Assembly: GCA_002269645.1 (NCBI GenBank)
Contig: NIVC01000137.1
Location: 625,177 to 689,176, forward strand
Source: Macrostomum lignano
Lineage: Eukaryota
Reading direction: 5' to 3'
DNA: 64,000 nt
Shown piece by piece: positions 13,281 through 55,039 of the stretch. A model generated the notes under the pieces. It was not told the DNA's origin and did no database searches. It saw only the letters and a program-made list of their open reading frames with translations. A program made the translations under genes and the position numbers. Each line of letters starts with the position of its first letter. Positions within the stretch are counted from its first letter, which is position 1.

Positions 13281-16526
<3,246 letters not shown>

Positions 16527-17359: not shown

Positions 17360-18103
17360 ATGGGATCTGAACTGAGGTTAATTTTGTTTATTAGCACCTT
17401 GAGCGCCCAGCTGCTGTCGGTGTGGGCCCAGTGCCCAGCCCCGTTCAACCTCGAGGCCGGCAAGTGCGTGTTCGTTAACACCGCTCAGAGCTTCAGCTGG
17501 TGCGAGGCCAACCGGCAGTGCGCCATGATCGGAGGCGAGCTGCGCAACTCGTACAGCTCTCTGCACCTGCTTGGAAGCATGCCGAGCATGAACTGCGACT
17601 GCCGCCTGTGGCTTGGAGTGACCGACTTGGCCGATGAGAGAGGCTCGAGCAGATCCGGCTGGCAGAGAATCAACAGCAATGACATTGTTCCGCTGAATGA
17701 CTCCATCTGGGAAGCACTCACTGAGCCGAATATGGGAGTTTTTGAGAACTGCATGCTTCAGACTGCTGGGAGTGGCGCAGGCAAGCTGGGAAACAACCCG
17801 TGCTCAATTCCCCGTGGCTTCGTCTGTGAGTTCAGTTCAAGTGCTGTCTCGTCGCCAATTAAGTGGAAGCAGATTCCGTTCAAGCGAACCAGCTACCATG
17901 CCAGCACTGAGTACTGCTACTCTGACCTGACCAATGTTCACTCCGAGCTGGCTTGTGTCATGTCAGCTTTCAATTCTGGCAACTGCAGACACGTGCTGTA
18001 CAACAGCAAGCTGAGAGCCTGCCGCCTGCTGCTGTTCACCGACGCTCAGGTGGAGGCCGAGATCGAGACGAGCGCCGACTGGGTCAAGTTCAGCGTGTTT
18101 TGA
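17360..18103 (+). CDS. Secreted C-type lectin domain + PAN/apple-like domain protein, copy 1 (247 aa)
   Basis: Signal peptide; CTLD motifs W-C-EA-C..GG.L, WLGVTD, EPN..ENC, C..GFVCE; C-terminal C..C..CRHVLY..C.L PAN-like pattern; apparently intronless. Confidence 0.9.
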   Translation: MGSELRLILFISTLSAQLLSVWAQCPAPFNLEAGKCVFVNTAQSFSWCEANRQCAMIGGELRNSYSSLHLLGSMPSMNCDCRLWLGVTDLADERGSSRSGWQRINSNDIVPLNDSIWEALTEPNMGVFENCMLQTAGSGAGKLGNNPCSIPRGFVCEFSSSAVSSPIKWKQIPFKRTSYHASTEYCYSDLTNVHSELACVMSAFNSGNCRHVLYNSKLRACRLLLFTDAQVEAEIETSADWVKFSVF

Positions 18104-18715
18104 GCAATTTTAGATGGTGAAGTCACTTAACCAATAAGTAGTGTACGGAGGTTTAGCAAACTTTTGAATTTTTTTTGTAAAGAAGCAGCCTATTTTGTTA
18201 AATTCATAGTTAACGTATTAATGACAGAATAGAAACGAAAAAAAGTAAAAGTTGATGAATTCATATTATCGAAATGTACACTTTTTTCCACGAACCGCTT
18301 TGACTGAGCAATAATTAAAATCCTTAGGGTCCTACTGATTTTCATTAGGTCGATTTTTGGTACAACGCTTGTTTATTCCTCATTTAGAGTTGGAATCAAA
18401 ATTTCTAAATCTATTTATAAGTTTTAGAAAGCTGAAAATGAGCTCGTGATTAATAAAACCAACCGAATATGAAATAAAATTGGTCGACATGATATTTCGT
18501 GTTTGATGCAAATTAATTTTCTGAACTTCAGCTTTGGTTTCTTTTGAGTTTCCCTCCAAATTTGGTGTTCTAAGCTATGACTGGCATTTCACGCTGTGCT
18601 TTTGACCAGGGGCGTTGCCATGTGTTTTATTGTGGGGGACGAAGCCAAGGATTCCACATGTACATTACTGAATTCCTACATGTACATTGGGAATCAGTGT
18701 TGTTACCACTCATTC

Positions 18716-19731
18716 TAGCGCCGCAGGCACTCATTTTGGCACAACAGGCGCTCATTTTGGCACAACAAGCACTCATTTTGGCACAACAGGCACTCATTTT
18801 GGCACAACAGGCACTTATTTTGGCACAACAGGCACTTATTTTGGCACTACAGGCACTCATTTTGGCACTACAGGCACTCATTTTGGCGCTGCAGGCACTC
18901 ATGTTAGCGCCGCATTCACTCATTTTGACGCCGCAGGTACTAATTTTGGCGCCGCAGGCACTCATTTTGGCGCCGCAGACACTCATTTTGGCGCCGCAGG
19001 CACTCATTTTGGCACAACAGGCGCTCATTTTGGCACAACAAGCACTCATTTTGGCACAACAGGCACTCATTTTGGCACAGCAGGCGCTCATTTTGGCACA
19101 ACAAGCACTCATTTTGGCACAACAGGCACTCATTTTGGCACAACAGGCACTTATTTTGGCACAACAGGCACTTATTTTGGCACTACAGGCACTCATTTTG
19201 GCGCTGCAGGCACTCATGTTAGCGCCGCATTCACTCATTTTGACGCCGCAGGTACTAATTTTGGCGCCGCAGGCACTCATTTTGGCGCCGCAGGCACTCA
19301 TTTTGGCGCCGCAGGCACTCATTTTGGCGCCGCAGGCACTCATTTTGACGCCGCAGGTACTAATTTTGGCGCCGCAGGCACTCATTTTGGCGCCGCAGGC
19401 ACTCATTTTGACGCCGCAGGTACTAATTTTGGCGCCGCAGGCACTCATTTTGGCGCCGCAGGCACTCATTTTGGCGCCGCAGGCACTCATTTTGGCGCTG
19501 CAGGCACTCATTTTGGCGCCGCAGGCACTCATTTTGGCGCCGCAGGCACTCATTTTGGCGCTGCAGGCACTCATTTTGGCGCTGCAGGCACTCATTTTGG
19601 CGCCGCAGGCACTCATTTTGGCGCTGCAGGCACTCATTTTGGCGCCGCAGGCACTCATTTTGGCGCTGCAGGCACTCATTTTGGCGCCGCAGGCACTCAT
19701 TTTGGCGCTGCAGGCACTCATTTTGGCACCG
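18716..19731. repeat. 21-bp minisatellite (GGCACTCATTTTGGCGCCGCA / GGCACAACA variants)
   Basis: About 48 tandem units; explains the long repeat ORFs on both strands. Confidence 0.95.
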
Positions 19732-21041
19732 CAGACCTCGAACCTAGGGCCAGGAAGAGGAAGACCTCAAAGAACAGGAGCGCATTCTTCTGACCCCGAA
19801 TCTCTGAATCAGTGCACTTGCTCACTTATTCACCATGACAGTTTTATGTATAAAATTTGGCTTATAAAATCTGGGGGTTACCTATGTGGGCGGCCATAGG
19901 AATCCAATTGGATTTTGGCGCCCGGAATTAAAATTTTTGATTTACACTACGGGACACAAGGACGAAACTAAAATAGAAAAAGCAATGTTTGGTTGAACTC
20001 TATACTTTCGAATTTAAGTTTGGACTATATCGAGACTAGCTAGTGACTTGTTCTTACAAAATCTCCCACTCGAGTATGATGATCGAATTATGACTGTATC
20101 GGTCGGTATGAGAGGATTGGTACCTCTGGTGTTTAAATAACCAGGTAACCCACAAACAATTTATTTAGCTAATCACACGCACATTTAATGTCTATCCGAT
20201 AGTCAAACAGTTTTGATAGAAATGCAACCTTTTCGATTCCAGATCTTGAACTGAGACCCCACCGAACTTCATTTCGAACAATCTTAATGGTGTTACAGCA
20301 GCTTACCGTACATAAGGATAAACTACAAAGATTCCGTGCTGCAAGTTGACAACAGAACCAAAATAAACTGGATTTTACAACCCAGCTAGCTAGCAACGAA
20401 AAAATATCAAACTGCTAACGCTGCAAAAGTCAATAAGTTATTACGCTTGCCCTCTGAAATCAGTGAATTGGAAGCGTCGAACCGATTCAGAAACAGATAG
20501 CAGACTACCCGTCTATCTGATGGATTGAAGTTTTCCACAGTTTAAAACAAATTCATATTATTAATCTTCAACATGACACTAATAACTGATTCCTTTAATT
20601 TTTTCATTCAATGAAAAGAGAGAATGTTTTTCTTCAAGGTCTCATATTACGCCATAGATTGATTACCAGAACTGGTGGGCGGTGAGTCGGTCGTTATTTC
20701 GTAGTTGAGAAGCCTATTAGCTGAAATCCGATTTAGAAAATCTCTATAACTCATTGGGATAGCAACTAAGCGGTAACTCGTAAAAACTTCAGCCCAAAAG
20801 GTTACCAAAAGTCTGAGCCATCCCTTTGTAGATTCAGCTCAATCCTTCATACTTGCCTTTTGACCAATGGGAGCACGACACGGCTCACAGCGAACTACTG
20901 GTTGCTGAAACATATATAGGATTTTTTGCGGAGGAAACATGATCAGAAATTTCGGCATTGTTCGAAATTAAATCTAAGATACTATTAACCTTGAGTCTGA
21001 GAGTAATACTCACAAAAACAAACAATAATTCTGTTAAAATC

Positions 21042-21779
21042 ATGAAATTTAATTTCGTGCTCCTTCTTCAAGGAATTATCAGCCACCAGTTGCTGCCAGC
21101 CCTGGCCCAGCTGTGCCCCGCGCCGTTCAGCCTTGAGGCGGGAAAATGCATATTCGTGAACAAGGTGAACAGAGTCAGCTGGTGCGAGGCCAACCGGCAG
21201 TGCGCCATGATCGGAGGCGAGCTGCTCAACTCGTACAGCTCTCTGCAGCTGCTCAGCAGCATGCCGAGTTTCGCCTGCAGCAGCTGCCACATCTGGTTTG
21301 GAGTGACCGACTTGGCTGATGAGAGGTCTTCGAGCCGATCGGGCTGGCTGATGGTCAAAGACAACGGCGTCATGCCGCTAGATAACTCACTGTGGGGTGC
21401 TTCAACTGAGCCAAACGGAGGCACCGGCGAAAACTGCGTAATACATTTGTCGCATGGAAAAATCGGAAACTACTTTTGTCCTCGCTCACTCGGATTTGCT
21501 TGCGAGTGGAAGCCGAGGACTTCTCAGACGCATCTGAATTTTGAACTGACTCCGTTCAAGCGGACCAGCTACCATGCCAGCACTGAGTACTGCTACTCTG
21601 ACCTGACCAATGTTCATTCCGAGCTGGCTTGTGTCATGTCAGCTTTCAATTCTGGCAACTGCAGACACGTGCTGTACAACAGCAAGCTGAGAGCCTGCCG
21701 CCTGCTGCTGTTCACCGACGCTCAGGTGGAGGCGGAGATCGAGACGAGCGCCGACTGGGTCAAGTTCAGCGTGTATTGA
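21042..21779 (+). CDS. Secreted CTLD + PAN-like protein, copy 2 (245 aa from ATG 21042)
   Basis: MKFNFVLLLQGIISHQLLPALAQ signal; EPN motif; paralog of copy 1; the ORF-track start at 20958 is a TTG. Confidence 0.9.
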   Translation: MKFNFVLLLQGIISHQLLPALAQLCPAPFSLEAGKCIFVNKVNRVSWCEANRQCAMIGGELLNSYSSLQLLSSMPSFACSSCHIWFGVTDLADERSSSRSGWLMVKDNGVMPLDNSLWGASTEPNGGTGENCVIHLSHGKIGNYFCPRSLGFACEWKPRTSQTHLNFELTPFKRTSYHASTEYCYSDLTNVHSELACVMSAFNSGNCRHVLYNSKLRACRLLLFTDAQVEAEIETSADWVKFSVY

Positions 21780-23177
21780 GAATTGCGTGATGTCAGTTGA
21801 TGCCGATATCATATCGAAGAAATATTACTTTAATCCTGAGAAACGATAAAAACTAAAAACGCAAACTTGTTATCTGTAATACAACCTTCGAATCCTAAGC
21901 TATATACACGGAAAAACTATTCAAAAGTATACTCGTTTTCTTCTTTTTTTGCTTTTTTCTTCGAGCAATATACAAAGGTGATTTTCTATCATTCATCTAT
22001 CATTGAGACCCGAGCGCCGCTTTTTGCTTTTTCTTAAGAATTACTTAAAATGACAGACCGTGATAACCAGGGTCGCATCGATGTGGAGGAAATTATACCT
22101 TTAATAGACTGTCAGTCATTAAAATACTTGCGCTGCATTCAAACGTTTACAAGTGTCTTCCATGCATTCTAAACTATATTCGTTTTATTTTATCTGCAGA
22201 ATCATTGGTTCACTCAGCAAAAGTTTCAGCATACATCAGTAAACGATCCTAAGCTTTAAGAACGTCAGTTCTCAACTTTCCTTTCTCTGTTCTTGCAACG
22301 CCCACACGTCCAGGATGCTTTTCGGCTTTAGTTAACGGCCTTCAATTATTCCTTTACAATGTACTAAAACTCCTTTTAGTAAAAAGTCTATGCAGTTGGC
22401 AAGAAGGCAAGAAAATTCCCGGCGACGGACAACAATGGCGAAGTTTTTAATTGCCTTTAGATCCTTAGACTTTAAACAAGAGTTTTCTCAAACAGGCTGG
22501 TTTCCGTGTGATCTCAATGATTTATTAATGCTTTAGCCGAAGCTGCCAGTGAAGTGGCTTTAGTAAACAATAGTGCTGTCAGCTTATGCACTGGAGTCTA
22601 GTGAGAACAATGGCAGTAGGAAGTAGTTCCTTGTAGGCAAGCTTGTTGTCCGTAGAAGTGCAGCAGAGAATAATGAGAAAAAGAGAGCCTCACTGGCCCA
22701 AATCTCGCAAGCGCGCACTGAGATTCAATGCATATGCGCAGGATACTGAAAAGTTGAAGAAGATAAAGAACTCTGCTGCGTTTGAAAATTCGCTCCACGG
22801 GACAGAAATCCCTCACAATTCAAGTGTAAAATTCACAGTAGGGTTGGCATCTGCAGAGAGCATCCCGATCCCATAACCAGTGCTACGTCAATTCTTCCCA
22901 TTCCGCTGACTCCTGAGCTCAAACAAGCGCGCGGATGTACAGCCGCCCTGACTGACTATCGGCAGAAAGCTCCATCTGATCTTTGAATGAGGTTTGATCA
23001 ACCTACTAAAGATTACGGTAGAAACTCAGTAGGAAAAAATGAGAAAGATCTTCGAGTAGTTCGGACTGGTCTAGAGGTTTATGACAGTGGCAAAAGGCTT
23101 GTGTGAATGAGACAAGCACAGGAGTCAATTAAAATGTTTTATCAAATACCTGCGTTCTTGTTAGCAAACACAAGTAA

Positions 23178-23485
23178 GGGGTTGTAGCCTAGTGGTTAGA
23201 GCGTCTGACTCACGACTTAAAGGTCGGGTTTTCGATTCCTGATCCCACTGGAACAATTTGTTTCCTTGAGCAAGACACTCAACTCTGAATTGCTTCAGTT
23301 CACCCAGCTGTAAAATGGGTGCCAGCATTAGCTGGGGTAATTGAGGCTGCGTGTGGCGACCCCCTCCAGTCCTTGGACTGAACAGCCGTACGCAGCCTTC
23401 AGATGCGCCGCGAAAATAGCTGCGGCTGAGCTGTCGGTTGCACATCTGGCCCAATTAGGTCAGGTGTAATCAATTATGATTATTA
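23178..23485 (+). mobile_element. tRNA-derived CORE-type SINE (copy 3) with target-site duplication
   Basis: tRNA-like head, CORE-like block, ATT tail; 14-bp direct repeat TTAGCAAACACAAG at 23161-23174 and 23486-23499. Confidence 0.9.
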
Positions 23486-23634
23486 TTAGCAAACACAAGC
23501 AATCTGCGGCCCCTGTTTGGACGACAACAGAAAAAGACTTTATTAATTAACTACATGTACGTTTTGATCTTGTACAGTCCCTATTGTTTATTTCTCAAGA
23601 CAAATATGATGTTTAACGCAAAAAAGCAAAAGCC

Positions 23635-24339: not shown

Positions 24340-25035
24340 CAAGATGCTGGGATGTCAAGGCTTTTGTTGGGGGAAATTGCTGAGATGTCAAGTCTTTGGT
24401 TGGGGGAAATTGCTGAGATGTCAAGTCTTTGGTTGGGGGAAATTGCTGAGATGTCAAGTCTTTGGTTGGGGGAAATTGCTGAGATGTCAAGTCTTTGGTT
24501 GGGGGAAATTGCTGAGATGTCAAGTCTTTGGTTGGGGGAAATTGCTGAGATGTCAAGGCTTTTGTTGGGGGAAATTGCTGAGATGTCAAGGCTTTGGTTG
24601 GGGGAAATTGCTGAGATGTCAAGTCTTTTGTTGGGGGAAATTGCTGAGATGTCAAGGCTTTTGTTGGGGGAAATTGCTGAGATGTCAAGGCTTTTGTTGG
24701 GGGAAATTGCTGAGATGTCAATGCTTTTGTTGGGGGAAATTGCTGAGATGTCAAGTCTTTGGTTGGGGGAAATTGCTGAGATGTCAAGGCTTTTGTTGGG
24801 GGAAATTGCTGAGATGTCAAGTCTTTGGTTGGGGGAAATTGCTGAGATGTCAAGGCTTTTGTTGGGGGAAATTGCTGAGATGTCAAGGCTTTTGGGGGGT
24901 ATTGCTGTGATGTCAAGTCTTACGGGGGAATGCTGAGATGTCAAGGCTCACGGGGGAATGCTGTGATGTCAAGGCTTACGGGGGAATGCTGAAATGACAA
25001 GGCTCACGGGGGAATGCTGAGATGGCAAGGCTAAT
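24340..25035. repeat. 33-bp minisatellite (GGGGGAAATTGCTGAGATGTCAAGGCTTTTGTT), changing to shorter units at the right end
   Basis: About 17 units of 33 bp plus several shorter variants. Confidence 0.95.
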
Positions 25036-26401: not shown

Positions 26402-27148
26402 ATGTTGTTGAATTATCTGCTGATTTTTCAGGGCTTTCTTAACAGCCAGCTGCTGCGAGCCCTGGCCCAGCTGTGCCCCTCGCCGTTCAGCCTTGAGGCC
26501 GGGAAGTGCATATTCGTGAACAAGGTGAACAGAGTCAGCTGGTGCGAGGCCAACCGGCAGTGCGCCATGATCGGAGGCGAGCTGCTCAACTCGTACAGCT
26601 CTCTGCAGCTGCTCAGCAACATGCCGAGTTTCGCCTGCAGCAGCTGCCGAATTTGGTTTGGAGTGACCGACTTGGCTGACGAGAGATTCTCGAGCAAGTC
26701 TGGCTGGCAGATGATCAACGGCAACGGCATCATGCCGCTAGATAACTCACTGTGGGCTTTTTCATCTGAGCCAAACAGAGACACCATTGAGAACTGCATA
26801 GTGCATTTGTCCTATGGGAAATTTGGCAATAGTCAATGCGCGGCTAAGTATGGATTCGCTTGCGAGTGGATTGCTACGTCCCCTGAGTCACAATCTGATT
26901 TCGCCTCGTGGAAGCGAACTCCGTTCATGCGTACCAGCTACCATGCCAGCACTGAGTACTGCTACTCTGACCTGCTGCAGGTTGGCAACGCAATGAAGTG
27001 CGTAGCGGCTGGCATGAGATCGGGCAACTGCAGACACGTGCTGTACAACAGCAAGCTGAGAGCCTGCCGCCTGCTGCTGTTCACCGACGCTCAGGTGGAA
27101 GAGGAGATCGAGACGAGCGCCGACTGGGTCAAGTTCAGCTTGTTTTGA
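26402..27148 (+). CDS. Secreted CTLD + PAN-like protein, copy 3 (248 aa)
   Basis: Signal MLLNYLLIFQGFLNSQLLRALAQ; EPN motif; paralogy to the other copies. Confidence 0.9.
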   Translation: MLLNYLLIFQGFLNSQLLRALAQLCPSPFSLEAGKCIFVNKVNRVSWCEANRQCAMIGGELLNSYSSLQLLSNMPSFACSSCRIWFGVTDLADERFSSKSGWQMINGNGIMPLDNSLWAFSSEPNRDTIENCIVHLSYGKFGNSQCAAKYGFACEWIATSPESQSDFASWKRTPFMRTSYHASTEYCYSDLLQVGNAMKCVAAGMRSGNCRHVLYNSKLRACRLLLFTDAQVEEEIETSADWVKFSLF

Positions 27149-27814
27149 GCAAGACGAAATCTTGCAGTACATCTCAATGTAGCAAATAACATTGCTACAA
27201 TTTTAATAAGTAAATTTTAAGTGTTCGAAGACAAACAGATCCAAACATACTTTGGTCTCCTGAATTTCAACTATACAAAACTAACATAATATCGAGAATT
27301 TCTGTACGATCTAGTCTATTAAAGTATACTGAATATATGAATTTGTATATGCATATTGTAGTAGGGCATATAGCTTAAGAAGGGGTAACGCAGATTTTAT
27401 TTGACGCTACTGACAGCAGGTTTCGTTGCCGAAATGTCAATATAAACGTATAGAAAGCACATCATTTGATATTCGAAGCTTTTTACTTTTGTTGATTTCT
27501 GTTATGGTCGTACCTGCAGTTAAAAAAGTCATCGTATTCACGTAATTCCAACGCATCAAAACATTGAATCACGCCTCCAATTCTGCTTTATTCAAAAAGT
27601 CTTGCTTAGGACTTTACAGGGAAAAGGTAGTTATGAAACACAATACTTGAAACGCAAAAGAACACTGATATCTTGGGCCTTATTGCAAATATTATAAGTT
27701 ATTTGTAGCAGCTAACAACAAATCATTCGATACCTCTTGAAAGTTCCAGTGTACGTCAGCGGCATTCTCATTTTTTACAGCCTGGACACCCATAGGATTT
27801 AAGCCGTACGCTTT

Positions 27815-30613: not shown

Positions 30614-30885
30614 CCCCAGTTACACCCAAGTGGCCTAGCTGCATGAGCTGGCGGCCATGCCCATGATGGCCAATAGGATCCGCGCCCTGGGCGTAGGCTG
30701 GCTCCCTAGAGCTGCCCGCAATCGCCCTCCAGTGCTGAACCTCCTGTGGGACAGCCTGAAAAGGCGACAAGTCAATGGACAACCAACAACCCACAACCCG
30801 CCCTAGACTAGCTAAGTTAACGACCCCAAAATTTTGGTGTTAGCACAACCAGCGACTTATTCCCTCCTCTCTCTCTCTCTATCAT
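30614..30885 (+). mobile_element. Probable 3' fragment of a non-LTR retroelement at the breakpoint of unit A
   Basis: GC-rich frame ..MANRIRALGVGWLPRAAR.. resembling a LINE ORF2 C-terminus, followed by a (CT)n tail; begins where homology to unit B stops. Confidence 0.3.
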
Positions 30886-31239
30886 TATAAAAGTTCTTTC
30901 TTCCTCTGCTTTTTCGACTCCCTCTCCCCTTGTTCTTCCTATCAGCCGTCTGTTATTAGCGCACTATTCAAACAAATTGCTAGACTAAACAAAACTATAC
31001 GAGCGTACTAACGAATACACTAATAGCGGCGAGGGCTGGATACGGCAGGGGTGCCCAGGACCCAGCAGTTTTTCATGCAGTACAGGCAGTATTTAAGAAT
31101 GCAGTGCAGTGTGTTTTTCACTTGTGATTGGCTTCTGTCTTGATGATTCGCTGTTTTTATATATCTTCTGTTACAATCCAATTTTTATACACTTGCTTTT
31201 TTACATCTGCTTTTTATCTCTATTTTTGCTTCCGAGATT

Positions 31240-34000
31240 TCGTTTATGCAACACAAATGCTGCTTTTATTTATGCTTTTACCTCACCAATGTTTTTATTT
31301 CTATACCTAATTAGGCTGTCTGTGGAATGTAAATGCCCCTATTTCAACTGTCTGTAAGTAGTCTAGTGTAATCGATTCAGGAAATCGTTTCCCAAAACAT
31401 AAAAAGAGCTTTCTAAAATTACCACTACAAGACTTCTCTAACTGGCCTAACTACCTGATTAGCAGACACTGATATCCTGGCATTTCTTGGTTTGTCAAAA
31501 TTACACATTCGGCGTATTCACAAAGTTTTGCTTCGGACTTCAGAACAAAAAATATTTTACAATGTCGTATAGCGGTTTATTTAAATAGTTCGCGTTCAGA
31601 CGGCTAATTATACTCGTATATTTATTTTTACTTCACGATTCGAAACCTTGACAATCTATATAATTAAACTTGGCATTAACTAAGGAATAACAAAGACTAT
31701 TACTAATAGAAATACATGCACCAATCAGGAGGCGGTGCAAAACGACGGGAAAAACAGGAGAGAGAAGAGAAGTACACAATTAAATTCTACCCGCGGTTTA
31801 AATACCATACAAATTTTTGGAACCATACAGTAAAACAAAGGTAATCATCAAGGTAATAATCAAAATTTAATACAAATAAAAAATAGATAATAACAAATAC
31901 ACTATATATAAATATAATTAAATCTACATCGTTACAGTCGAAAGTAAAAAGCGAAAAATTTACTGCCATATTCTTGGAGCAACCACCCAATCATTCGTTT
32001 AGCTCACAAAAGTTTTAGTATCGTCTGCTGCATTCTCATTCCTTATAATTCGACATTATAAATCGAAACGTTAAATTCTTGCTTCTGCTACTTCTCTCAA
32101 AACCTTGTAGAAGTCAGCTAGAAGCCAAAAAAACAAGGCGCAGAGAACCATAGGCGTAGGAGGGGGGGCAGTGGGGCCATAAAGTGGGGGGGGCAGTAAT
32201 GGTATCTGGCCCCTCCACATTTTAAATGCAAAATGTAGTCTTTTCACTTAGTTTTTACTCTTTTTTTGGGTTTTGGCTACTTCGCATGAACTTTAAAAAT
32301 GTCATTGACATCATAAGCGACATGTCTTCCAAAAAACCCTCCCCAGGGATTAGGGAATTTTTTGGGGTAATTGGATTCCCTAGTCCTTTGCTAAAAGATG
32401 GCCCCTGCCCCCCCCCCCACTTTTTGAAACGTTCCTACGCCTATGAAACAATGGAGAATAAATGGAGAACAATGACGAAGGATTTTCATTGTCTTGCTTG
32501 CAGCATTGTCTCACCGTCACGGTTTAGCGAGCAGCGCAGAAAAAAAAAATTTTTTTTTCAAAAGTGGATTTTTGCGTGAGTGAAATGACTTTTTCGTCAT
32601 GAAAAGTTTCTATGTGGTAGCGATCTCTCTAGCCCGTACTATGAACAGCAGTACCACAGTCTAATATGATTGTGCATCTTATCCTTCTAAGCTTTGGCCA
32701 TAAGAAAGTCTTCTAATTGGCTCAGCACTATGCTGACAAAGGGCCGACTGCTTGCGCACGTGGTCCGCAAAAATTCAGTAAAGAGTAGGGAAGCAAGCGG
32801 AAAGCAAAAGAGGAGGATAAAACCTTGATCGTGCGCCAAACAGTAAGTTGAAAAAGATGAAGTACACAACAACATTTTGCTCAAAAGAAGAGTTTGCACA
32901 CGATTTTCGAGTGATGCACTTTTTATGGAGGTGCAGATTAAATGCGGCGACGACGTAAAAAATGCACTGGACAAGCAGCATTGCCAAAAGTCCATTTCAG
33001 TCCATCTCAGCCAGAAGCCAACAGAAAATACTATACTTACCTTCTACTCGTTTGTAGGCAAACTCACATGGCATGGTTGCCATGAACTCTTCTTCTAAAC
33101 TTTGAGATCCATGATAACTCTTGACTAACTGAGTTCCAAACACTTCAGCTCAATAGAAAAACGCTTCCAAAACTTTGTTACACAGTCAAAAAGTCATTTC
33201 GAGTCAATACAGTTACTCCAGCACTAAACACGGCTCTGTAGCGGAGTTACAAGCCAAAGCTGCTAATTCTGTTTAAAAAATTCTCTCATGCTATTTGTCA
33301 GATCGAAAAGCTGGCAGATCAAGTTCGTATCTCAGTTACTAAGCAGCCAACTAACTAATGCTCGAAAACTTATTTGGGACGACTGCGGATTGCTGAGCCA
33401 GCAGTTCAACTTTTTTCCTCGCTTTTTTTCATACGCAATGCATTTTTACGATCGGCTTATCCCGGAAAGATTCCAAGTCTATAGAGAGGTTTTCCAATAA
33501 ATTAGAAAGCGCATTCTTCCGTGATCCCAACAACTTACTTGTCGCTAAAATCGTCTTCAGAAATGTTTGAATAGTCAGGAGCCCAACAGACGGAAAATTT
33601 CCCCTGGGAGAGTTCAAGTCCCTGTCAGCTGGTTACTCCCAGCAGCCCAAAGCAGGATGCTATATTTTCTACAAAAGTGACTCAGTTTCAAATTTTGATG
33701 GGATTTTTCTCTAACCTTGGTTGGTGCCCATGCTGAATTTAACTGCATGAATGAAGTCTTCATGCCTATAGCTGGAGTTAAAGCTCATAACTCATGCAAA
33801 AATAGCGATAGACAAACCATGCAGGAGTGTATACCATTCTCAGTGTTTTCGACCAATGAGGGAGAAAGCCGTAAGTCATTACTAAATTCAGACTTTAAAT
33901 TTTCGTCAAAAATGTGAAATGCAGGATGCAAATAAGAAAGAGCGCATCTGACCAGGTCTTGGCAAAACCTGAAAATTTTACAACCATATTGACTGTATTA
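31240..34000 (+). repeat. Segmental duplication unit B (upstream region of lectin copy 4)
   Basis: Homologous to 36620-38229 and 27815-30613. Confidence 0.8.
32149..32445. mobile_element. MITE (297 bp) with 13-bp terminal inverted repeats
   Basis: CATAGGCGTAGGA ... TCCTACGCCTATG; absent from homologous units A and C; TSD not clear. Confidence 0.75.
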
Positions 34001-34023
34001 CACTTTTGAAAATTTTAGCAGAT

Positions 34024-34773
34024 ATGAATTACGGCTCGTATAAGTTTGTTTTTCTGAACACATTTACCAACCAGCTGCTGTCAGCCCTGGCCCAGCTGTG
34101 CCCCTCGCCGTTCAGCCTTGAGGCCGGGAAGTGCATATTCGTGAACAAGGTGAACAGCATCAATTGGTGCGAGGCCAACCGGCAGTGCGCCATGATCGGA
34201 GGCGAGCTGCTCAACTCGTACAGCTCTCTGCAGCTGCTCAGCAGCATGCCGAGTTTCGCCAGCTGTAGCTGCCGAATTTGGTTTGGAGTGACCGACTTGG
34301 CTGACGAGAGGTCTTCGAGCAAATCGGGCTGGCAGTTGGTCAACGGCAACGGCGAAATGCCGCTAAACAACTCACTGTGGGGTGTTTCACATGAGCCAAA
34401 CGGAGGCACGGAGGAAAACTGCCTAATACATTGGTCGTATGGAAAAATCGGAAATCACTTTTGCTCTCGTTCACTTGGATACGCTTGCGAGTGGACTCCG
34501 AGTGCCGCTCAGCCATTGCCAAAGTCTGCCTCGTGGAAGCGAACTCCGTTCAAGCGGACCAGCTACCATGCCAGCTCTGAGTACTGCTACTCTGACCTGC
34601 TGCAGGTTGATAACGCAATGAACTGTGCAGCGGCTGCCATGAGATCGGGCAGCTGCAGACACGTGCTGTACAACAGCAAGCTGAGAGCCTGCCGCCTGCT
34701 GCTGTTCACCGACGCTCAGGTGGAGGAGGAGATCGAGACGAGCGTCGACTGGGTCAAGTTCAGCGTGTACTGA
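34024..34773 (+). CDS. Secreted CTLD + PAN-like protein, copy 4 (249 aa from ATG 34024)
   Basis: Paralog; EPN motif; first ATG at 34024. Confidence 0.9.
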   Translation: MNYGSYKFVFLNTFTNQLLSALAQLCPSPFSLEAGKCIFVNKVNSINWCEANRQCAMIGGELLNSYSSLQLLSSMPSFASCSCRIWFGVTDLADERSSSKSGWQLVNGNGEMPLNNSLWGVSHEPNGGTEENCLIHWSYGKIGNHFCSRSLGYACEWTPSAAQPLPKSASWKRTPFKRTSYHASSEYCYSDLLQVDNAMNCAAAAMRSGSCRHVLYNSKLRACRLLLFTDAQVEEEIETSVDWVKFSVY

Positions 34774-34804
34774 GCTTTTCGAGACGCCACTGTTTTATCG
34801 GAAA

Positions 34805-34910
34805 GGAAATTTCGGCAAAGATCAATGCGCAGATGAGAAAGGAATTGCTTGCTAGTGAAATGCTACGCCCCCTGAGTTACAATCTGATTTTGCTTCTTCT
34901 AAGCGGACTC
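34805..34910 (+). pseudogene. About 105-bp relic of the copy-3-type variable segment of the lectin gene
   Basis: GGAAATTTCGGCAAAGATCAATGCGCAG...CCCCTGAGTTACAATCTGATTTTGC aligns to 26817-26921 (GKFGNSQC..CEWIATSPESQSDFA); contains an in-frame stop. Confidence 0.75.
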
Positions 34911-35640
34911 AGCGTTTTTGAGACGGAGTTTTTTATGCAAAGTGAATTGTGAACAGATTCTGTGGTAAAATTTTAAACTATCTATTCGAGCAAAAAAACG
35001 TTACTTTTTTCTGTATCTTCTGACGTATTCAGCAGCCTTAAAGGTGTGCGCTTTAAAAGGCTTATATCATTTTTCCTAATTATCGTTATAAAGCGTCTCT
35101 CCAATTGGTATATTGTCTCGAAATTTCAATATTTATATATTTTTTCGAACTTATGAACTCTGTATTTTTCTATGTTTATGCACCGATTCGAGATATACGC
35201 TCGTACGCAATTGACAATTTTAATCAATGCAAGAGCTATTCACAATTAATTTCTATCTGTCGCTTTTCTAGCTTGAAATCTTCTTACTTCGTTGCGTAGT
35301 AACGAGCTATAGTTTCCTGAGCGATTTTTCCTTTATAGGATAGGAGTGCGAGTAAACTTTCGGACGGTCATCCCTTGCTAGCTTATTACGGGTTCTTTTA
35401 ATATTACTATTACTACTACTAATACTTTTATTATTACTATTGCTACTATTACTATTTCTGTTATGACGTGTGCACTTGGAATATCATAGAATAGAATAGA
35501 GTAATTTGTTCGAGAAAGTTGTCCTCTTATTTTGCTTTGTTTACTTTACGAGCTTTACCACTAGCGCTTATGGTTATATCTCCTCTGGAATTGAGTAGGT
35601 GATTTAGCGGTTATGAAGTTTCGCCTTTGTAAAAGCAACC

Positions 35641-36193
35641 CGTGACCGGTAGAGTGACCGGTAGGGTGACCAGTAGGATGACCGGTAGGGTCACCGGTAG
35701 GGTGACCAGTAGGATGACCGGTAGGGTCACCGGTAGGGTTGACCGGTAGGGTCACCGGTAGGGTCACCGGTAGGGTCACCGGTAGGGTCACCGGTAGGGT
35801 CACCGGTAGGGTCACCGGTAGGGTCACCGGTAGGGTCACCGGTAGGGTCACCGGTAGGGTCACCGGTAGGGTCACCGGTAGGGTCACCAGTAGGGTCACC
35901 AGTAGGGTCACCGGTAGGGTCACCGGTAGGGTCACCGGTAGGGTCACCGGTAGGGTCACCGGTAGGGTCACCGGTAGGGTCACCGGTAGGGTCACCGGTA
36001 GGGTCACCGGTCGGGTCACCGGTAGGGTCACCGGTAGGGTCACCGGTAGGGTCACCGGTCGGGTCACCGGTCGGGTCACCGGTAGGGTCACCGGTAGGGT
36101 CACCGGTCGGGTCACCGGTCGGGTCACCGGTAGGGTCACCGGTAGGGTCACCGGTCGGGTCACCGGTAGGGTCACCGGTAGGGTCACCGGTAG
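35641..36193. repeat. 12-bp minisatellite (GGTAGGGTCACC)
   Basis: About 45 tandem units, degenerate at the left end. Confidence 0.97.
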
Positions 36194-36290
36194 GTGTTCG
36201 ACATTTTCAACTCGAGGTGAGCCGGTATATTAAACCTAAATAGCATAAAGACGCGCAATCATGGCTTTTAAATTTGCATCCGTTTTTTGC

Positions 36291-36612: not shown

Positions 36613-36619
36613 AAATTCT

Positions 36620-38229
36620 AAGCTGCATCTGCTTTTTAATTTTATTTTTTGTATACATTCCCCTCTGGTAAACTTAACTTAGGCTTTCTGTGTAATGTAA
36701 ATTCCCCTCTTTTAGACTGTCTGTAAGTGATCTAGTGCAAACGCTTTGTTTCCCAAAACATAAAAAGAGCTTTTTAAAATAAACATAGCAAGCCTTCTCT
36801 AACAGGCCTAACTACCTGATTAGCTGACACTGCTATTAAATTGGTCTGGAATGTTTTGGCATTGTCGCAATTAAAAATTCGGCGAATTCACAAAGTCTTG
36901 TCTCGAACTTCATTTAGCAAAAATATTTTACAATGACGAACGTAAACAGCGAAAATTTACTGCCTTATTCTTGCAGCAACCACCAAATCATTCGTTTAGC
37001 TCCCCTAAGTTTTAGTATCGTCAGCTGCATTCTCATTCCTTCTACAGACTAAAAGCCAATATGATTTTCGCTTTTAGCCATCGACGTTGAATTCGTGTCT
37101 TAGCTGCTTCTCTCAAAGCCTTGTAGAAGTCGGCTAGAAGCCGAGAAACAATGTTCAAAGTCTCCGCGACGGAGAACAATGACGAGGGAATTTCCTTGTC
37201 TTGCTTGCAGCATTGTTTCACGGTTTAGCGCAGAAAAAAAGAAAAATTTCTTTGTCACGAATGTGGATTTTTGCGTGGGCGAAATGACTTCTTCGTCATG
37301 GAAAGTTTCTATTGTGGGAGCTCTCTACTGTGAACAGCAGTTACAGTCTAATATGCTCGTGCATTTTTTCCTTCTCAGCTTTGGGCATAAGAAAGTGTAC
37401 AAATTGGCTCAACATGGTGATGACAGAGGGCTAGGTGCGTGGGCCCTAAAAATTCAGTAAAGAGTAGGGAAGGAAGCGGGCTCGGTTGAGAGGAATCAAG
37501 AAGGAAGAGGAAATCAAAAGAGGGGGATAAATCTTTGGTCATGCGCCAAGCAGCAGTAAGATGACAAAGATGAAGTACAGGACTAGATTTTGCTCACAAA
37601 ATAAAGAGTTCGCTCGCGATCCGATCTATTCGATTAATTACAGCGACGCCGTAACAAATACACTGGAGAAGCGGCATTGCCTGCAGGTGAAAATATGACG
37701 TCCCTGTGGTTGTCACGCACTCTACTGGACTCTGAGATCCATGAATGGCTGTTTCTAGTCAATAGTTACTCCATCCAGTACTAAGCTCGTACATACGGCT
37801 CTATAGGAGAGTTATAAGTCTAATCTGCTTATTCTGTTAACAAAATTCTATCATGCTTGTGTTATTTGTCTGGTCGAACAACAGTTCACGGATCAAGTTT
37901 CTCTCTGTTACTAATTATAAGCAGCCAACTAGCGAATGTTCGAATGTCGCTATTGCTCGGGCAATTGCTGCTTGCTGAGCCAGCATTCAACTCTTTTCTT
38001 CGCTTTTTTTAAATTCGCAATGCATTTTTACGATCGGCTTATGCCGGGAATATTCCAACTCTATAGAGAAGTTTTCCAAAAGGCGCATTCTACCGTGATA
38101 CCAGCGACTTACTTGTCGCTGAAGTCGTCTTCAGCAATGCTTGAATAGTCAGGAGCTCAGCAGATGGAAAATTTTCTCTGGGAGAGTTCAAGTCCCTGAC
38201 AGCTGGTTGGTCCTAGCAGCCCAAAGCCC
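36620..38229 (+). repeat. Segmental duplication unit C (upstream region), fused directly to truncated lectin copy 5
   Basis: Homologous to 31240-33650; junction at AGCAGCCCAAAGCCC|GGTGCTTC. Confidence 0.8.
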
Positions 38230-38613
38230 GGTGCTTCAACTGAGCTAAATGGAGGCACCGGTGAAAACTGCATAATACATTTGTCGCATGGAAAAATCGG
38301 AAACTACTTCTGTCCTCGCTCACTCGGATTTGCTTGCGAGTCGAAGCCGAGGACTTCTCAGACGCATCTGAATTTTGAACTGACTCCGTTCAAGCGGACC
38401 AGCTACCATGCCAGCACTGAGTACTGCTACTCTGACCTGACCAATGTTCACTCCGAGCTGGCTTGTGTCATGTCAGCTTTCAATTCCGGCAACTGCAGAC
38501 ACGTGCTGTACAACAGCAAGCTGAGAGCCTGCCGCCTGCTGCTGTTCACCGACGCTCAGGTGGAGGCGGAGATCGAGACGAGCGCCGACTGGGTCAAGTT
38601 CAGCGTGTATTGA
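38230..38613 (+). pseudogene. 5'-truncated lectin copy 5 (3' half of copy 2), no start codon or signal peptide
   Basis: 384 nt colinear with 21396-21779 with about 8 substitutions, including EPN->ELN and W->S. Confidence 0.85.
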
Positions 38614-41194
38614 GATTTTTGATATGTTTTTTATTACAAAGTGAATTGTGAACAGATTCTGTGGTAAACATTTTAAACCACGTATTCGAGTAAAATTTAA
38701 ATTGTCTGGTTCTTCTTACCTACTCAGTGTCCTCATCATTAAATTTCAAGACACGGTTATTCTCTCTCTAAGCGTCTCTCTAATTGGTGTATTGTCGCGA
38801 AAGTTTGATAGTGAATTTTTTTTTACTTTCTGTATTCTGTTACTTTTCTGTATCTCTTTCTGTACCGATTTGAGCAATGCGCAATCACAAATTTTATTCA
38901 ATGCCAGATCTGATCATCACTAATTTGTTCTTCGTAGAAGTACTCGTAAAATTTCGAACGCTCATCGATCGATCGCCAGCTTTTTTCTGTTAATACTTGA
39001 GCGCTCGGAATTTCGTACAAGGTGTGTTTTGCTCGAGGAATTTTTGTTCCCTTGTTTTGGTTTGCTACCCTCGCGAGCTTTGGCTGTCACAAGCGCATAT
39101 GATTATCTCCTCTGGATTTGAGGCATGTATATTGACTTTCAAGTAATGCTCTATAACTGAGCACAGCTATTTATGACTTTTCCTATGCTATTTACTCTGA
39201 AAAAATACACTTCTAATTAGTGGAGTATATTTGCAATTGGTTATCGAATAAAATTCTTGATTACTGATTTGTGCTTGAGGCTGTTGGCGGAATGGAAAAC
39301 TCTGTGACTATCGACGCTCCATAGATTGAAATTGGAGAGACTGGGAAGTAACATTTGCTATATCTTATGTGTATGATTATGCAAATGCAACATTGAATGA
39401 ACCTTTTCGGTTATGCTAAGTGACTGGAATGAATTCTGTATATTGAATCTACAAATTACTTTTAGAACTGTGTTCCCGAAGGTCTTGATGACTTGATGAC
39501 TGATTTTCATTCATAGCTTACAAATTGTCGTAGCAAGGATGCTGAACTTCATTGTGGAACGGTATAGCGGGCCTTGACTGGTCAACTTCCTCAATGAGCA
39601 GCGTACGTTACGCCTCAGCGATAAAATATATCCCTTAACTTGATATTTTAAAGAATTTTCGATAACAGAAGACAAAAAATAAAAAAATAGGCTGTCCAAT
39701 AGGTTCTTTAGTTTTAATAAATAATTATAGCATTGTCACAGTGCACGTCCTTAAGACGAGTCCATTGTCCTTATAGTTTCTGACAATGAAAAACATCGCT
39801 TGGATGAAAATAATATTTTCAAAGTAGACCCTTTTTAATAACAGCTTGAGGCTGACCCCCGACATAATTGTCTGACATACTCGATTATAAGTCCCGAAAC
39901 AGGGAAAAAACACTTGAAAATTACCAACTTTTATCAATTAGAGTACCAAAGCCTCACTGAGAATACTTAAAATTCTTCTTGTAGTATATTTTTCTAGTAT
40001 TTGACGTCATTTTCATTACATTTAGTTATTATCCTAGTTCTTTTTGCTTTTGTGCTGACTAGATTCCAACTAGCAGTCATTTATATTGTCATTATTTTAA
40101 ACGTTTTTTTCAAGTGACAGACCAATTTAACATGAAAAAATCGATTAATACGTCGTTAGAGCAGCATGTGAGGCACAAAATAGTGTGATTAGAACTTTCT
40201 CTGACACTGTTAAGAGACCCAATCACTGTTTTAGTGTTGAAAATCGTGAAATTTCCTATCTCCGTAGTGTATTTTTTCCGGTGAAACCTGCCCTTAAAAC
40301 TATTTCTGAACGAAAAGCTTTATGAATATCGATAGAGCAATAAGAAAGGCACAACATATCAAAAGATGAACACTGGATCTGCCTCCTATCAAAAGCAATA
40401 ACAATTTTTGTGCTGAAAAAATTAAAACCTCCTATCTCTGTAGTGTATTTTTCGGCGAAAAGTTGCCTTCAAAACATTTACCGTAGATTTCGAGTGTTGC
40501 GTCCTTCTACTTAAGTTGTCCTAGCTTTTGCTCTGCTTTTGCGGGCTAGCGAAAATGCGTTCAACTCCTTTTATCCTTTTTAGACATCTATCATCTAACT
40601 TATCTGACTTGGCAAAATTGTCTTTACTAAAGCAGACGAGTCTGGAAACTCCCGAAAGCAAGAGAAAGAAAGCCCCTGGTTCACGATGGAGAAAAACGCT
40701 TTGTCTTGCTTTCAACATTTGACTTTGAAGATTTGTTATGATGCTACTTTCGAAATTTGTGGAAGTAGCATCAGTAGCACATTAAAAACTTTAAACATCA
40801 TAACTTATACAATTTTATTAGGGTTCTTTCAACATTTTAATTGTATATATTTAGTACCGTTGTAATATTGAAGTCGAATCATATTCATCTCCAAGCGGAG
40901 AAATTCGTTGAAAAGTATTTTAAAGCAAATAAAACAAGATTTTACGATCCATTTAAATCGTAAATAGCATTTCTTTGATCTCCGAATTGCGACCGACAAA
41001 GCCCAAGATAAAGCGCACAGAAATGCTAAGCTATTTGCTTTCCTATAGATTATGGGGTAGGACTGAACTAAAAAATTGCATTTAAAACATAAAAAGTTTG
41101 TCAACAGACTTGAAGCAAATCTTTCCAAAAACAGTCCTCATGCAGTCTTCACAGCTAGTTTTCATTTTTTCCTTTTTCAACAATAAAATTCTCA

Positions 41195-41764: not shown

Positions 41765-42072
41765 GTGAAAGCTTGTGAAAGCTTGTGAAGGCTTATGAAA
41801 GCTTGTGAAAGCTTGTGAAGGCATATGAAAGCTTGTGAAAGCTTGTGAAGGCTTATGAAAGCTTGTGAAAGCTTGTGAAAGCTCGTGAAAGCTTGTGAAA
41901 GCTTGTGAAGGCTTATGAAAGCTTGTGAAAGCTTGTGAAAGCTCGTGAAAGCTTTTGAAAGCTTGTGAAAGCTTGTGAAAGCTTGTGAAGGCTTATGAAA
42001 GCTTGTGAAAGCTTGTGAAGGCTTGTGAAAGCTTGTGAAAGCTTGTGAAAGCTTGTGAAAGCTTGTGAAAGC
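41765..42072. repeat. 10-bp minisatellite (GAAAGCTTGT)
   Basis: About 30 tandem units. Confidence 0.95.
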
Positions 42073-42239
42073 ATCCCCTCGACATTCGATCATCTTGCGC
42101 CATTGGCCTCGCACCAGGCCAGGTAGAACTTCCCTCTTTTTCCTTTGCTTTTTGTTGAAATTATAACATTTTATGCCAAACGTGAAAAGTCTGAAAGTAA
42201 GCTTTATAATTATACTTGTAACAAATGTTGGTAAGACTA

Positions 42240-42556
42240 TAGGGGCGTCATAATACACAATAGAGGGGCGCCATAATACACAATAGAGGGGCGCCATAAT
42301 ACACAATAGAGGGGCGCCATAATACACAATAGAGGGGCGTCATAATACACAATAGAGGGGCGCCATAATACACAATAGAGGGGCGCCATACCAGTAATAC
42401 ATAATAGAGGGGCGCCATAATACACAATTGAGGGGCACCATAATACACAATTGAGGGGCGCCATAATACACAATAGAGGGGCGCCATAATACACAATAGA
42501 GGGGCGCCATAATACACAATAGAGGGGCGCCATAATACGCAACAGAGGGGCGCCAT
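42240..42556. repeat. 23-bp minisatellite (ATAGAGGGGCGCCATAATACACA)
   Basis: About 13 tandem units. Confidence 0.95.
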
Positions 42557-42777
42557 TCTGAGCAAATCGAGGGCGTGAGAACCTCTATTGGCTTTATTCA
42601 GGGGCGTCATCACCGCCAGCCACAATGGGTCGGGGGGTGGGCGGCAGTCCCCCGCCCCCGCCGCCTAAATCCCGCCCCTGTGCAGCGTTGCTAAGATTTC
42701 AAATCCTAGCAGGTCTAATGAGAGTAGAGTTAAGACAATACCATCAAAAACCTTTTATAACAAAGCTCATACACACG

Positions 42778-42786
42778 TATAAAAAG
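42778..42786 (+). promoter_or_regulatory. Candidate TATA box of lectin copy 6
   Basis: TATAAAAAG about 45 bp upstream of ATG 42828; a similar TATAAAA lies upstream of copy 3 (about 26330). Confidence 0.4.
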
Positions 42787-42827
42787 CCGACTGCGAATTA
42801 AAGATCTGGCTACAGCCTGTGATTATT

Positions 42828-43589
42828 ATGCGTGGGCTTGTCATGGAGTCCAAGCCCCTCATGGTGTTCCTTCTCGCCTTTCTGGACAGCCAGCAGCAGC
42901 CAGCCCTGGCCCAGCTGTGCCCCTCGCCATTCAGCCTTGAAGCCGGAAAATGCATATTCGTGAACAAGGTGAGGAGCTTCAGCTGGTGCGAGGCCAACCG
43001 GCAGTGCGCCATGATCGGAGGCGAGCTGCTCAACTCGTACAGCTCTCTGCAGCTGCTCAGCAGCATGCCCAGTTTCGCCTGCAGCAGCTGCCACATCTGG
43101 TTTGGAGTGACCGACTTGGCTGACGAGAGATCTTCGAGCCGATCGGGCTGGCAGTTGGTCAACGGCAACGGCGTCATGCCGCTGAATGACTCACTGTGGG
43201 GTGCTTCAACTGAGCCAAACGGAGGAACCGGAGAAAACTGCGTACTGCATTTATCCTATGGAAAAATGGGAAATTTCTATTGTTCTCGCTCACTCGGATT
43301 CACTTGCGAGTGGACTCCGAGTGCCGCTCAGCCGCTGCCAACTGCTGCCTCGTGGAAGCTGACTCGGTTTAAGCAGACCAGCTACCACGCCAGCACTGAG
43401 TACTGCTACTCTGACCTGCAGCCGGTGGCCAACTCGCTGCAGTGCATGGCGGCTGCCATCAACTCAGGCAACTGCAGACACGTGCTGTACAACAGCAAGC
43501 TGAGAGCCTGCCGCCTGCTGCTGTTCACCGACGCTCAGGTGGAGGCGGAGATCGAGACGAGCGCCGACTGGGTCAAGTTTAGCGTGTAG
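42828..43589 (+). CDS. Secreted CTLD + PAN-like protein, copy 6 (start at ATG 42828, 42843 or 42861)
   Basis: Paralog; EPN motif; hydrophobic MVFLLAFL..ALAQ leader. Confidence 0.9.
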   Translation: MRGLVMESKPLMVFLLAFLDSQQQPALAQLCPSPFSLEAGKCIFVNKVRSFSWCEANRQCAMIGGELLNSYSSLQLLSSMPSFACSSCHIWFGVTDLADERSSSRSGWQLVNGNGVMPLNDSLWGASTEPNGGTGENCVLHLSYGKMGNFYCSRSLGFTCEWTPSAAQPLPTAASWKLTRFKQTSYHASTEYCYSDLQPVANSLQCMAAAINSGNCRHVLYNSKLRACRLLLFTDAQVEAEIETSADWVKFSV

Positions 43590-54934: not shown

Positions 54935-55039
54935 GTGAGTGTTGGTGTCTTTGTGACATGTTTTTCTGTTTTATGATCTAACCATTGATGTTATTTTAAA
55001 AATACGCTATTATGATCCAGTGTCATATAATAGGCGAAG

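Follow-up and report, generated by a model that had tools for sequence, protein, structure and literature searches.

How do neighboring genes come to be nearly identical over some stretches and deeply diverged over those in between, and does such a pattern betray a system that diversifies recognition proteins? This question is raised by a tandem array of small lectin-like genes of Macrostomum lignano, which lies in a window of 64,000 nt (the whole stretch of DNA analyzed; assembly GCA_002269645.1, contig NIVC01000137.1, positions 625,177 to 689,176). A preliminary description of the locus had proposed a candidate diversifying recognition system. The analysis presented here argues, with good confidence, for a tandem birth-and-death family of small secreted proteins—each combining a C-type lectin-like domain (CTLD) with a PAN-like domain—whose members undergo interlocus gene conversion.

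Organization of the array

All positions are window coordinates, the array copies are named c1 to c6 in order, and columns are those of the alignment. The array spans 17.3 to 43.6 kb on the plus strand and comprises six related reading frames. Five of these are intact open reading frames (ORFs) of 245 to 249 codons that contain no introns; in addition, there is a sixth copy (c5) truncated at its 5′ end and a small decayed relic of a seventh. The intact genes c1 (17360–18103, 247 codons), c2 (21042–21779, 245 codons), and c3 (26402–27148, 248 codons) were delimited by ORF and alignment; for c2, the start is the ATG at 21042, the ORF listing having begun at an upstream TTG. Read from their ATG, c4 (34024–34773) has 249 codons and c6 (42843–43589) has 248. 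The fragment c5 (38230–38613) runs from codon ~120 to the stop and begins with “GASTELNGGTGENC”. A profile search of the window yielded no further array copies on either strand.

All copies follow one architecture, consisting of a signal peptide, the CTLD, and a PAN/apple-like domain. In each of the five intact ORFs, an in-frame stop lies 18–102 nt upstream of the ATG, and the N terminus is moderately hydrophobic and ends in ALAQ or VWAQ. The intact copies are accordingly predicted to encode a signal peptide and, with it, secreted proteins. This agrees with the preliminary description, which had listed five intact, apparently intronless secreted genes; likewise, every sequence block quoted there was found in the alignment, together with the pattern in which the copies share it. 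The homology between copies is restricted to the coding sequence (CDS) and stops 5–50 nt beyond the stop codon.

Mosaic structure of the copies

The closest relative outside the window, L001, is 62% identical and is encoded on a 967-nt ENA metagenome contig (k141_2599464). Measured against it, c1 is composed of two parts. Differences between c1 and c2 amount to 92 of 192 sites in columns 331–540 versus 4 of 222 in columns 541–762, and the same break is seen at synonymous sites, 51.5 of 97 of which differ 5′ of column 540 and 3 of 49 on its 3′ side (p = 6e-9). In the quartet of c1, L001, c2, and c6, c1 groups with L001 in columns 67–540 and with c2 in columns 541–759, each time in 1000 of 1000 bootstraps. 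The converted tract of c1 (17872–18115, plus strand) contains two of the three near-invariant blocks described below, B and C, with the “TNVHSELACVMSAFNSG” cassette between them, and continues into ~12 nt of the 3′ flank. It shows 4 of 222 differences to c2 and likewise to c5, and self-blastn aligns it with 38382–38623 of c5 at 96.7% identity. Judged by alignment and quartet bootstraps, c1 is a chimera: an L001-type gene in which the 3′ third, including the “TNVHSELACVMSAFNSG” cassette, has been overwritten by c2/c5-type sequence.

The truncated copy c5 combines a CDS and flanks of different affinity. Its CDS is 97.7% identical to that of c2, the flanks of which are unrelated to those of c5; the upstream and downstream flanks of c5 are instead 78% and 67% identical to those of c4. 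Within the CDS, c5 carries an EPN-to-ELN and a W-to-S change.

Recombination tests of the kind that the preliminary description had suggested gave positive results for the array as a whole. The pairwise homoplasy index (PHI) was significant across the five intact copies (p = 0.0002). A 3SEQ-like triplet test returned p = 0.0002 for 11 of 60 triplets and 0.0004 for one more, at a Bonferroni threshold of 0.0008, with c4 and c6 (each p ≤ 0.0002) among the mosaic “children”. A GENECONV-like run test was globally significant for c1–c2 (p = 0.0014) and c3–c4 (p = 0.0068), with a global p of 0.056 for each of c2–c3, c2–c6, and c4–c6; the pairwise p values were 0.006 for c2–c6 and 0.029 for c4–c6, and the runs of these two pairs coincide with the blocks named in the preliminary description.

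For c4, trees with L001 as the outgroup change along the gene: it groups with c3 in columns 67–330 (86%), with c2/c6 in columns 331–473 (95–99%), and again with c3 in columns 541–645 (71–76%). On these segment trees, c4 is a probable mosaic with a c3-like 5′ end and PAN variable block and c2/c6-like loops and linker. Segment distances place c6 close to c2 in columns 241–473 and close to c4 in the linker. An exchange between c4 and c6, with triplet tests at p ≤ 0.003 and outgroup quartets at 81–95%, is suggestive only.

The preliminary claim that no single tree fits the copies is therefore borne out by the PHI, triplet, and GENECONV-like tests and by the quartet switch of c1. Its attribution to gene conversion or unequal crossover likewise holds up, with segment incongruence, the contrast at synonymous sites, and the discordance of CDS and flanks in c5 in agreement. 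Part of the conflicting sharing patterns on which it was built has to be given up: the conflicts come from the grouping of c1, c2, and c5 in the 3′ third and from that of c4 and c6 in loop and linker, but the sharings of c2 with c6 and of c3 with c4 are one and the same split, which a single tree can accommodate.

Constant blocks

Three blocks are near-invariant among the copies at the nucleotide level, synonymous sites included. In c2 coordinates and on the plus strand, these are block A (21174–21272, WCEANRQCAMIGGELxNSYSSLQLL), block B (21555–21605, FKRTSYHASTEYCYSDL), and block C (21660–21776, CRHVLYNSKLRACRLLLFTDAQVEAEIETSADWVKFSVY). The DNA of block A is identical in c2, c3, c4, and c6. 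Considering degenerate codons whose amino acid is invariant across all five intact copies, none of 19 varies synonymously in block A (where the GC content at third codon positions, GC3, is 0.91) and 2 of 34 do so in block C. For the three blocks together the count is 4 of 67 codons, versus 28 of 51 elsewhere in the gene (Fisher p = 2e-9).

The proportion of differing synonymous sites (pS) gives the same picture. The mean within-array pS is 0.00 in block A and 0.04 in block C, with a GC3 of ~0.9 in both; in the middle region it is 0.44, with the c1 pairs saturated, at a GC3 of ~0.62. Between L001 and the array, pS is 0.38 in block A, 0.39 in block B (GC3 ~0.8), 0.24–0.28 in block C, and 0.73–0.81 in the middle region. 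Thus, L001 differs from the array in the constant blocks at a pS of 0.24–0.40, where the array copies differ from one another at 0–0.04. Since synonymous divergence (dS) within the array is near 0, the constant blocks are, by this measure, recently homogenized within the array; since L001 differs synonymously in the same blocks, a fixed function at the nucleotide level is not what keeps them identical. GC-biased conversion would be expected to produce such a high GC3, with selection on codon usage as the alternative.

Homogenization acts on a protein sequence that is itself constrained. A segment of 36 residues in block C, CRHVLYNSKLRACRLLLFTDAQVEAEIETSADWVKF, is identical at the amino acid level in the M. 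lignano protein P0001 and has one change in P0003, although both are only ~50% identical to the array proteins outside it; in two other M. lignano relatives, P0008 and P0027, the segment is much more diverged. Block C is on this comparison under unusually strong protein constraint, which covers half of the PAN-like domain.

Variable blocks

The blocks between the constant ones differ by substitution, apart from a single 9-nt indel in the linker. Regional pairwise ratios of nonsynonymous to synonymous divergence (dN/dS) are 0.19–0.54 in the binding-loop region from EPN to ACE, 0.24–0.55 in the preceding scaffold segment (columns 241–354), 0.5–0.9 in the linker, and 0.35–1.03 in the PAN variable block. 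They are never clearly greater than 1, and the maximum of 1.03 stems from one short PAN-block comparison. Selection at the variable sites had been put forward in the preliminary description as a check, and the range of 0.19–1.03 does not favor diversifying selection.

The synonymous divergence of the variable blocks is high or saturated, and in the middle of the gene 23–64% of synonymous sites differ between paralogs. The PAN cassette occurs as two types, which differ at 28 of 55 nt; these types are ancient, given the similarity of the c3/c4 type to L001 and to the M. lignano proteins. Taken on their substitution pattern, the variable blocks are old and not demonstrably fast-evolving at the protein level. 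The contrast between constant and variable blocks would mostly reflect gene conversion limited to certain regions on top of old divergence, as opposed to hypervariability.

Domain architecture and wider family

The CTLD is matched by the Pfam family Lectin_C at a borderline level. Except for the truncated c5, all copies match, with E-values of 7e-5 to 2e-3 and scores of 19.4–24.0 bits, and three of these five pass the cut-off of 22.6. A profile of the family finds MRC2/Endo180 (1.6e-8), DC-SIGN (1.7e-7), and tetranectin (3e-6) in the PDB, and in the wider family Lectin_C is found in 22 of 25 members, at a best E-value of 1.1e-11. The framework sought for this fold comprises the hairpin cysteines CPxxF/W...C, the WxGLTD motif, and the cysteine pairs C1–C4 and C2–C3; it is kept across the 25 family members as LCPxPF...GKC, W(F/L)GVTDL, RQC, ENC, xxC, and GFxCE. 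At the level of profiles and motifs, the assignment of the array copies to the CTLD fold can be regarded as sound. The EPN motif and the following Glu (in ENC) are conserved, and alignment with MRC2 places them at the canonical Ca2+/sugar site.

For the C-terminal domain, the Pfam family PAN_1 scores 11–16 bits in the copies of the window (E 0.008–0.4), below the cut-off of 21.4; in the wider family, 15 of 25 members match at E ≤ 0.01, the best at 4.8e-7. Two AlphaFold (AF2) models have a poor overall pLDDT (predicted local distance difference test) of 42.6 and 50.6, with values of 65–79 in the C-terminal domain. The top Foldseek matches are all PAN/apple modules, albeit weak ones (E ≥ 0.057, none at E ≤ 0.001).

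An exhaustive HMMER search returned 134 cluster representatives at E ≤ 1e-10, many of which have ~240 residues and match the profile from end to end. The named relatives among them are M. lignano proteins only, at ~50% identity. P0001 is a UniRef entry (A0A1I8...) termed “C-type lectin domain-containing protein”, and P0003, P0008, and P0027 are the lectin parts of fused gene models; all have the CTLD-PAN architecture of the array, belong to another locus, and are uncharacterized. The non-lectin parts of the fused models (symporter, globin) have no tblastn match in the window and so offer no hint of synteny. A profile search of an indexed protein collection with alignment A2 yielded four proteins, too few for a deep alignment, and none of the 165 pattern matches obtained by scanning metagenomes for the family was a relative. 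The CTLD-PAN family itself appears to be uncharacterized.

Flanks and history of the array

Most flanks cannot be aligned between copies; only those of c4 and c5 align. No repeats common to the gene flanks were found, nor any consistent promoter or 3′ motif shared between copies, with TATA-like and polyA-like signals varying from copy to copy. The alignable part is an upstream module of ~2.6–3 kb, which is present in three plus-strand copies with 75–79% identity in self-blastn. Module U_b (31302–33963) lies directly 5′ of c4. Module U_c (36669–38235) lies 5′ of c5, is 78% identical to the c4-flank type by self-blastn, and is fused to the c5 CDS. Module U_a (27708–30613) shares homology with the flanks that precede c4 and c5 and has no gene behind it: neither a profile search nor alignment scores, which were no better than those of shuffled sequences, revealed a decayed gene in 30600–31310. 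Hence, at least one unit of the array appears to have been lost.

At the c5 junction (38225–38235), an upstream flank of the c4 type is joined to codon ~120 of a CDS of the c2 type. The joint lies within a TGCT-like microhomology of 4–5 nt, and the point reached in the flank is equivalent to 363 nt upstream of the c4 ATG. A further remnant is the CDS relic at 34802–34912 (plus strand), which starts ~30 nt after the stop of c4, corresponds to columns 415–525 (nhmmer E = 2e-10), and contains two stop codons. It is c3-like, with 63% identity to c3 versus 43–47% to the other copies, and 3′ of it lies sequence resembling a 3′ untranslated region, which it shares with c5 and c6. The relic has the appearance of a remnant left by an unequal exchange or by the partial deletion of a gene.

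Proposed explanation

In a birth-and-death family with interlocus gene conversion, the paralogs would be old, as their mostly unalignable flanks and diverged mid-gene synonymous sites suggest, and would nevertheless keep swapping short tracts by non-allelic conversion. Conversion would be efficient in the three blocks that are strongly constrained at the protein level, leaving these near-identical in DNA and rich in GC3. Occasionally, a tract would run from a constant block through the adjoining divergent block and thereby transplant a whole cassette; such transfers would have occurred from c2/c5 into c1, between c2 and c5, and probably among c3, c4, and c6. Deletion and unequal exchange would remodel the array as well, by loss of a unit, by the microhomology-mediated truncation of c5, and by leaving the CDS relic. 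The conversion is presumably meiotic or otherwise germline and GC-biased. The products are presumably secreted binding proteins, in which different combinations of CTLD loop, linker, and PAN helix may confer different ligand preferences.

Understood in this way, the locus is a compact and clean case in which conversion and old divergence mimic hypervariability to the eye: in one gene pair, synonymous divergence passes from ~0.04 to saturation within a few dozen bases. A second point of interest is the uncharacterized family of secreted CTLD-PAN proteins in Macrostomum, in which a segment of 36 residues is extraordinarily conserved. Should the array vary between individuals or respond to microbes, it would offer a tractable model of a lectin repertoire in flatworms.

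Several observations weigh against this explanation or narrow it. When restricted to c2, c3, c4, and c6, PHI loses its significance (p = 0.84), and four-point quartets of these copies without an outgroup show no well-supported switch of topology; lineage-specific rate acceleration, especially on the long branch of the c3 loop region, could partly mimic exchanges among them. Between L001 and the array, pS in the constant blocks falls short of that in the middle region, and a constraint on codon usage or on the nucleotide sequence may add to the homogeneity of these blocks. The reference L001 (contig positions 1–967) has no ATG in the stretch between an in-frame stop upstream and the conserved “CPAPF” with which the mature protein starts, and a Ser stands in for one of the conserved PAN cysteines; L001 could be a pseudogene, or a start codon could be provided in another way. 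Short-read polishing could in principle have over-homogenized the constant blocks. As to the products, a complete set of ligands for Ca2+ site 2 requires EPN or QPD together with E and WND; in the family, [ILFM]-G-N stands at the WND position, with Gly in place of the canonical Asn and Asn in place of the canonical Asp. Because this position is not conserved, sugar binding by the array CTLDs is not assured.

Alternative explanations

The alternative that fares best is the one raised at the outset, a dedicated immune system in which the constant blocks serve as anchors for the reassortment of recognition cassettes under diversifying selection, possibly somatically, in the manner of FREPs or Sp185/333. 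It shares with gene conversion the reality of the mosaic, on which the PHI, triplet, quartet, and GENECONV-like tests agree. Moreover, variable residues of the CTLD are found in its half with the EPN motif and the loops that bind ligand, the inferred breakpoints fall at or beside the constant blocks, and the truncated c5 and the relic could in principle act as donors. The placement of the breakpoints, however, arises partly by construction, because the constant blocks hold no informative sites, and the dN/dS of the binding loops does not exceed that of the scaffold segment preceding them. Saturated dS in the variable blocks marks their diversity as old rather than newly generated. The array has no more than five or six genes and contains neither presence/absence elements nor shared bounding repeats, and its minisatellites are no denser than those elsewhere. 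With dN/dS not clearly above 1, dS saturated, and the hallmarks of Sp185/333 absent, the diversifying recognition system of the preliminary description is improbable. A more elaborate form of it would be a germline repertoire in which identical blocks are kept as anchors, modules of CTLD loop, linker, and PAN helix are reassorted, c5 and the relic are silent donors, and non-self recognition in the flatworm varies individually or somatically; its probability would be a shade lower still.

Diversity-generating retroelements (DGRs) also make use of the CTLD fold. A DGR-like mechanism was dropped on the grounds that the locus is a tandem array in a eukaryote and that neither a reverse transcriptase nor a template repeat lies close by, a point on which no dedicated test was made.

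An artifact of assembly or polishing, in which misassigned paralogous reads gave rise to chimeric copies or to artificially homogenized blocks, is very unlikely. The longest exact stretches that copies share, of 74–126 nt, could mislead short-read graph assembly or polishing. The window, however, is without Ns and spans many minisatellites of 0.3–1 kb, which implies a long-read assembly, and the flanks of each copy are unique. Identity within the converted tracts is 97–98% rather than 100%, with 4 differing sites between c1 and c2 and 9 between c2 and c5, as would be seen for distinct loci; a 55-nt cassette with 28 differences is not something that polishing could swap. On account of the absence of Ns, the unique flanks, and the 97–98% identity, a chimeric assembly in particular is unlikely.

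It is just as unlikely that the constant blocks are invariant through a function at the nucleotide level, for instance in RNA structure, as the target of a small RNA, or as a regulatory element. The lower pS between L001 and the array in these blocks (0.24–0.40, compared with 0.73–0.81 in the middle region) would fit such a function, as would the GC3 of the L001 blocks, which is also high. Against it, L001 has 5.5–7 synonymous differences per block where array copies have 0–2, and no unusual RNA folding is predicted for the blocks, which are no more stable in this respect than shuffled sequences (z −0.07 to −1.45). The discordance of CDS and flanks and the chimera c1 would also be left unexplained.

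Ordinary divergence of old duplicates under very uneven constraint along the protein, with no recombination at all, is the least credible reading: protein constraint is certainly part of the picture, the constant blocks being conserved even in the ~50% identical M. lignano paralogs, but it cannot remove synonymous differences (4 of 67 versus 28 of 51 codons) and accounts neither for the 1000-of-1000 topology switch of c1 nor for the c2-identical CDS of c5 within c4-type flanks.

Other features of the window

Long minisatellites are unusually abundant in the window, both in and outside the array. Their units, of 4–61 nt, are unrelated, and they reach lengths of up to 1.1 kb; examples lie at 927–1947, 13631–14177, 18707–19734, 24345–25032, 35645–36194, and 55037–56184. 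Each intergenic region of the array has its own minisatellite. Since they are equally frequent in the rest of the window, minisatellites are a feature of the genome and not of the array, and a role as array-specific promoters of recombination was rejected for this reason. A repeat of ~300 nt occurs upstream of c1 (15043–15354 and 15948–16201) and, inverted and with 89–91% identity, between c2 and c3 (23172–23488); it is probably a dispersed repeat or a transposon fragment.

Just upstream of c1, an ORF on the plus strand (15930–16526) encodes two polyglutamine runs and an acidic tail and has no Pfam match. Opposite the 5′ half of c2, c3, c4, and c6, the minus strand is open over 118–136 amino acids (21068–21424, 26428–26799, 34029–34409, and 42767–43177, respectively); these long antisense ORFs are probably a by-product of the GC3-rich codons. 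Beyond the array, the plus strand carries an exon of a serine incorporator (SERINC; 52542–53003, Pfam E = 7e-56), whose best database relatives, from an annelid and a mite, are ~55% identical; M. lignano is not represented among the hits. An intact transposase ORF of the mariner/Mos1 type with 353 codons lies on the minus strand at 62521–63582 (Pfam HTH_48, DDE_3, and Transposase_1). Neither this transposase nor c3 had an exact match in the public assemblies searched.

Comparison with known systems

The Sp185/333 (SpTransformer) genes of the purple sea urchin are built of “elements” that are present or absent, and each gene lies between short repeats that the genes have in common (PMC1988830). 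Proposed sources of their diversity are gene conversion, recombination, and mispairing (PMC1988830, PMC5103432). Like the array, they are closely linked small genes that encode secreted proteins of mosaic sequence, and their locus contains repeats. They have no sequence homology with the array, however, the blocks of which differ by substitution with one 9-nt indel in the linker and which lacks repeats common to its flanks. The analogy with Sp185/333, which the preliminary description had drawn along with that to FREPs, hence breaks down at the presence/absence elements and the bounding repeats, neither of which was found in the array.

Other diversified lectins of invertebrates resemble the array in being multigene families with sequence diversity among their members. 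In the Rlecs of the prawn Macrobrachium nipponense, the diversity consists of variable numbers of coding tandem repeats (PMC7536079), a type of variation that the array does not have. For the FREPs of Biomphalaria, the diversity is reported to be somatic (summarized in PMC1988830). Both differ from the array in architecture, which is here a CTLD joined to a PAN-like domain.

In clusters of plant resistance (R) genes and in the natural killer (NK) complex of vertebrates, mosaic genes are built by interlocus gene conversion or unequal crossover. Examples are the tomato Cf-4/9 cluster and other R-gene clusters, with exchange of sequence between paralogs (cited in PMC1988830), and the clusters of C-type lectin-like receptors in the NK complex, such as Ly49/KLR (PMC2910302, PMC5350243). 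The array resembles both in its linked paralogs of one orientation, in its mosaics, in homogenized segments that stand beside old divergent types, and in its truncated copies and relics; with the NK complex it also has the CTLD in common. Unlike these clusters, it encodes small secreted CTLD-PAN proteins of an invertebrate as opposed to receptors, is small, with five intact genes, and has its homology restricted to intronless CDS. By analogy, tandem clusters of receptor and resistance genes with exchange between paralogs would be its mechanistic match.

Rather than giving evidence of a new system of immune diversification, the array is, as read from its sequence, a tandem multigene family with mosaic concerted evolution. 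This placement follows from segment incongruence, from a synonymous homogenization specific to the array, and from the discordance of CDS and flanks, and it assigns the locus to a well-known evolutionary route.

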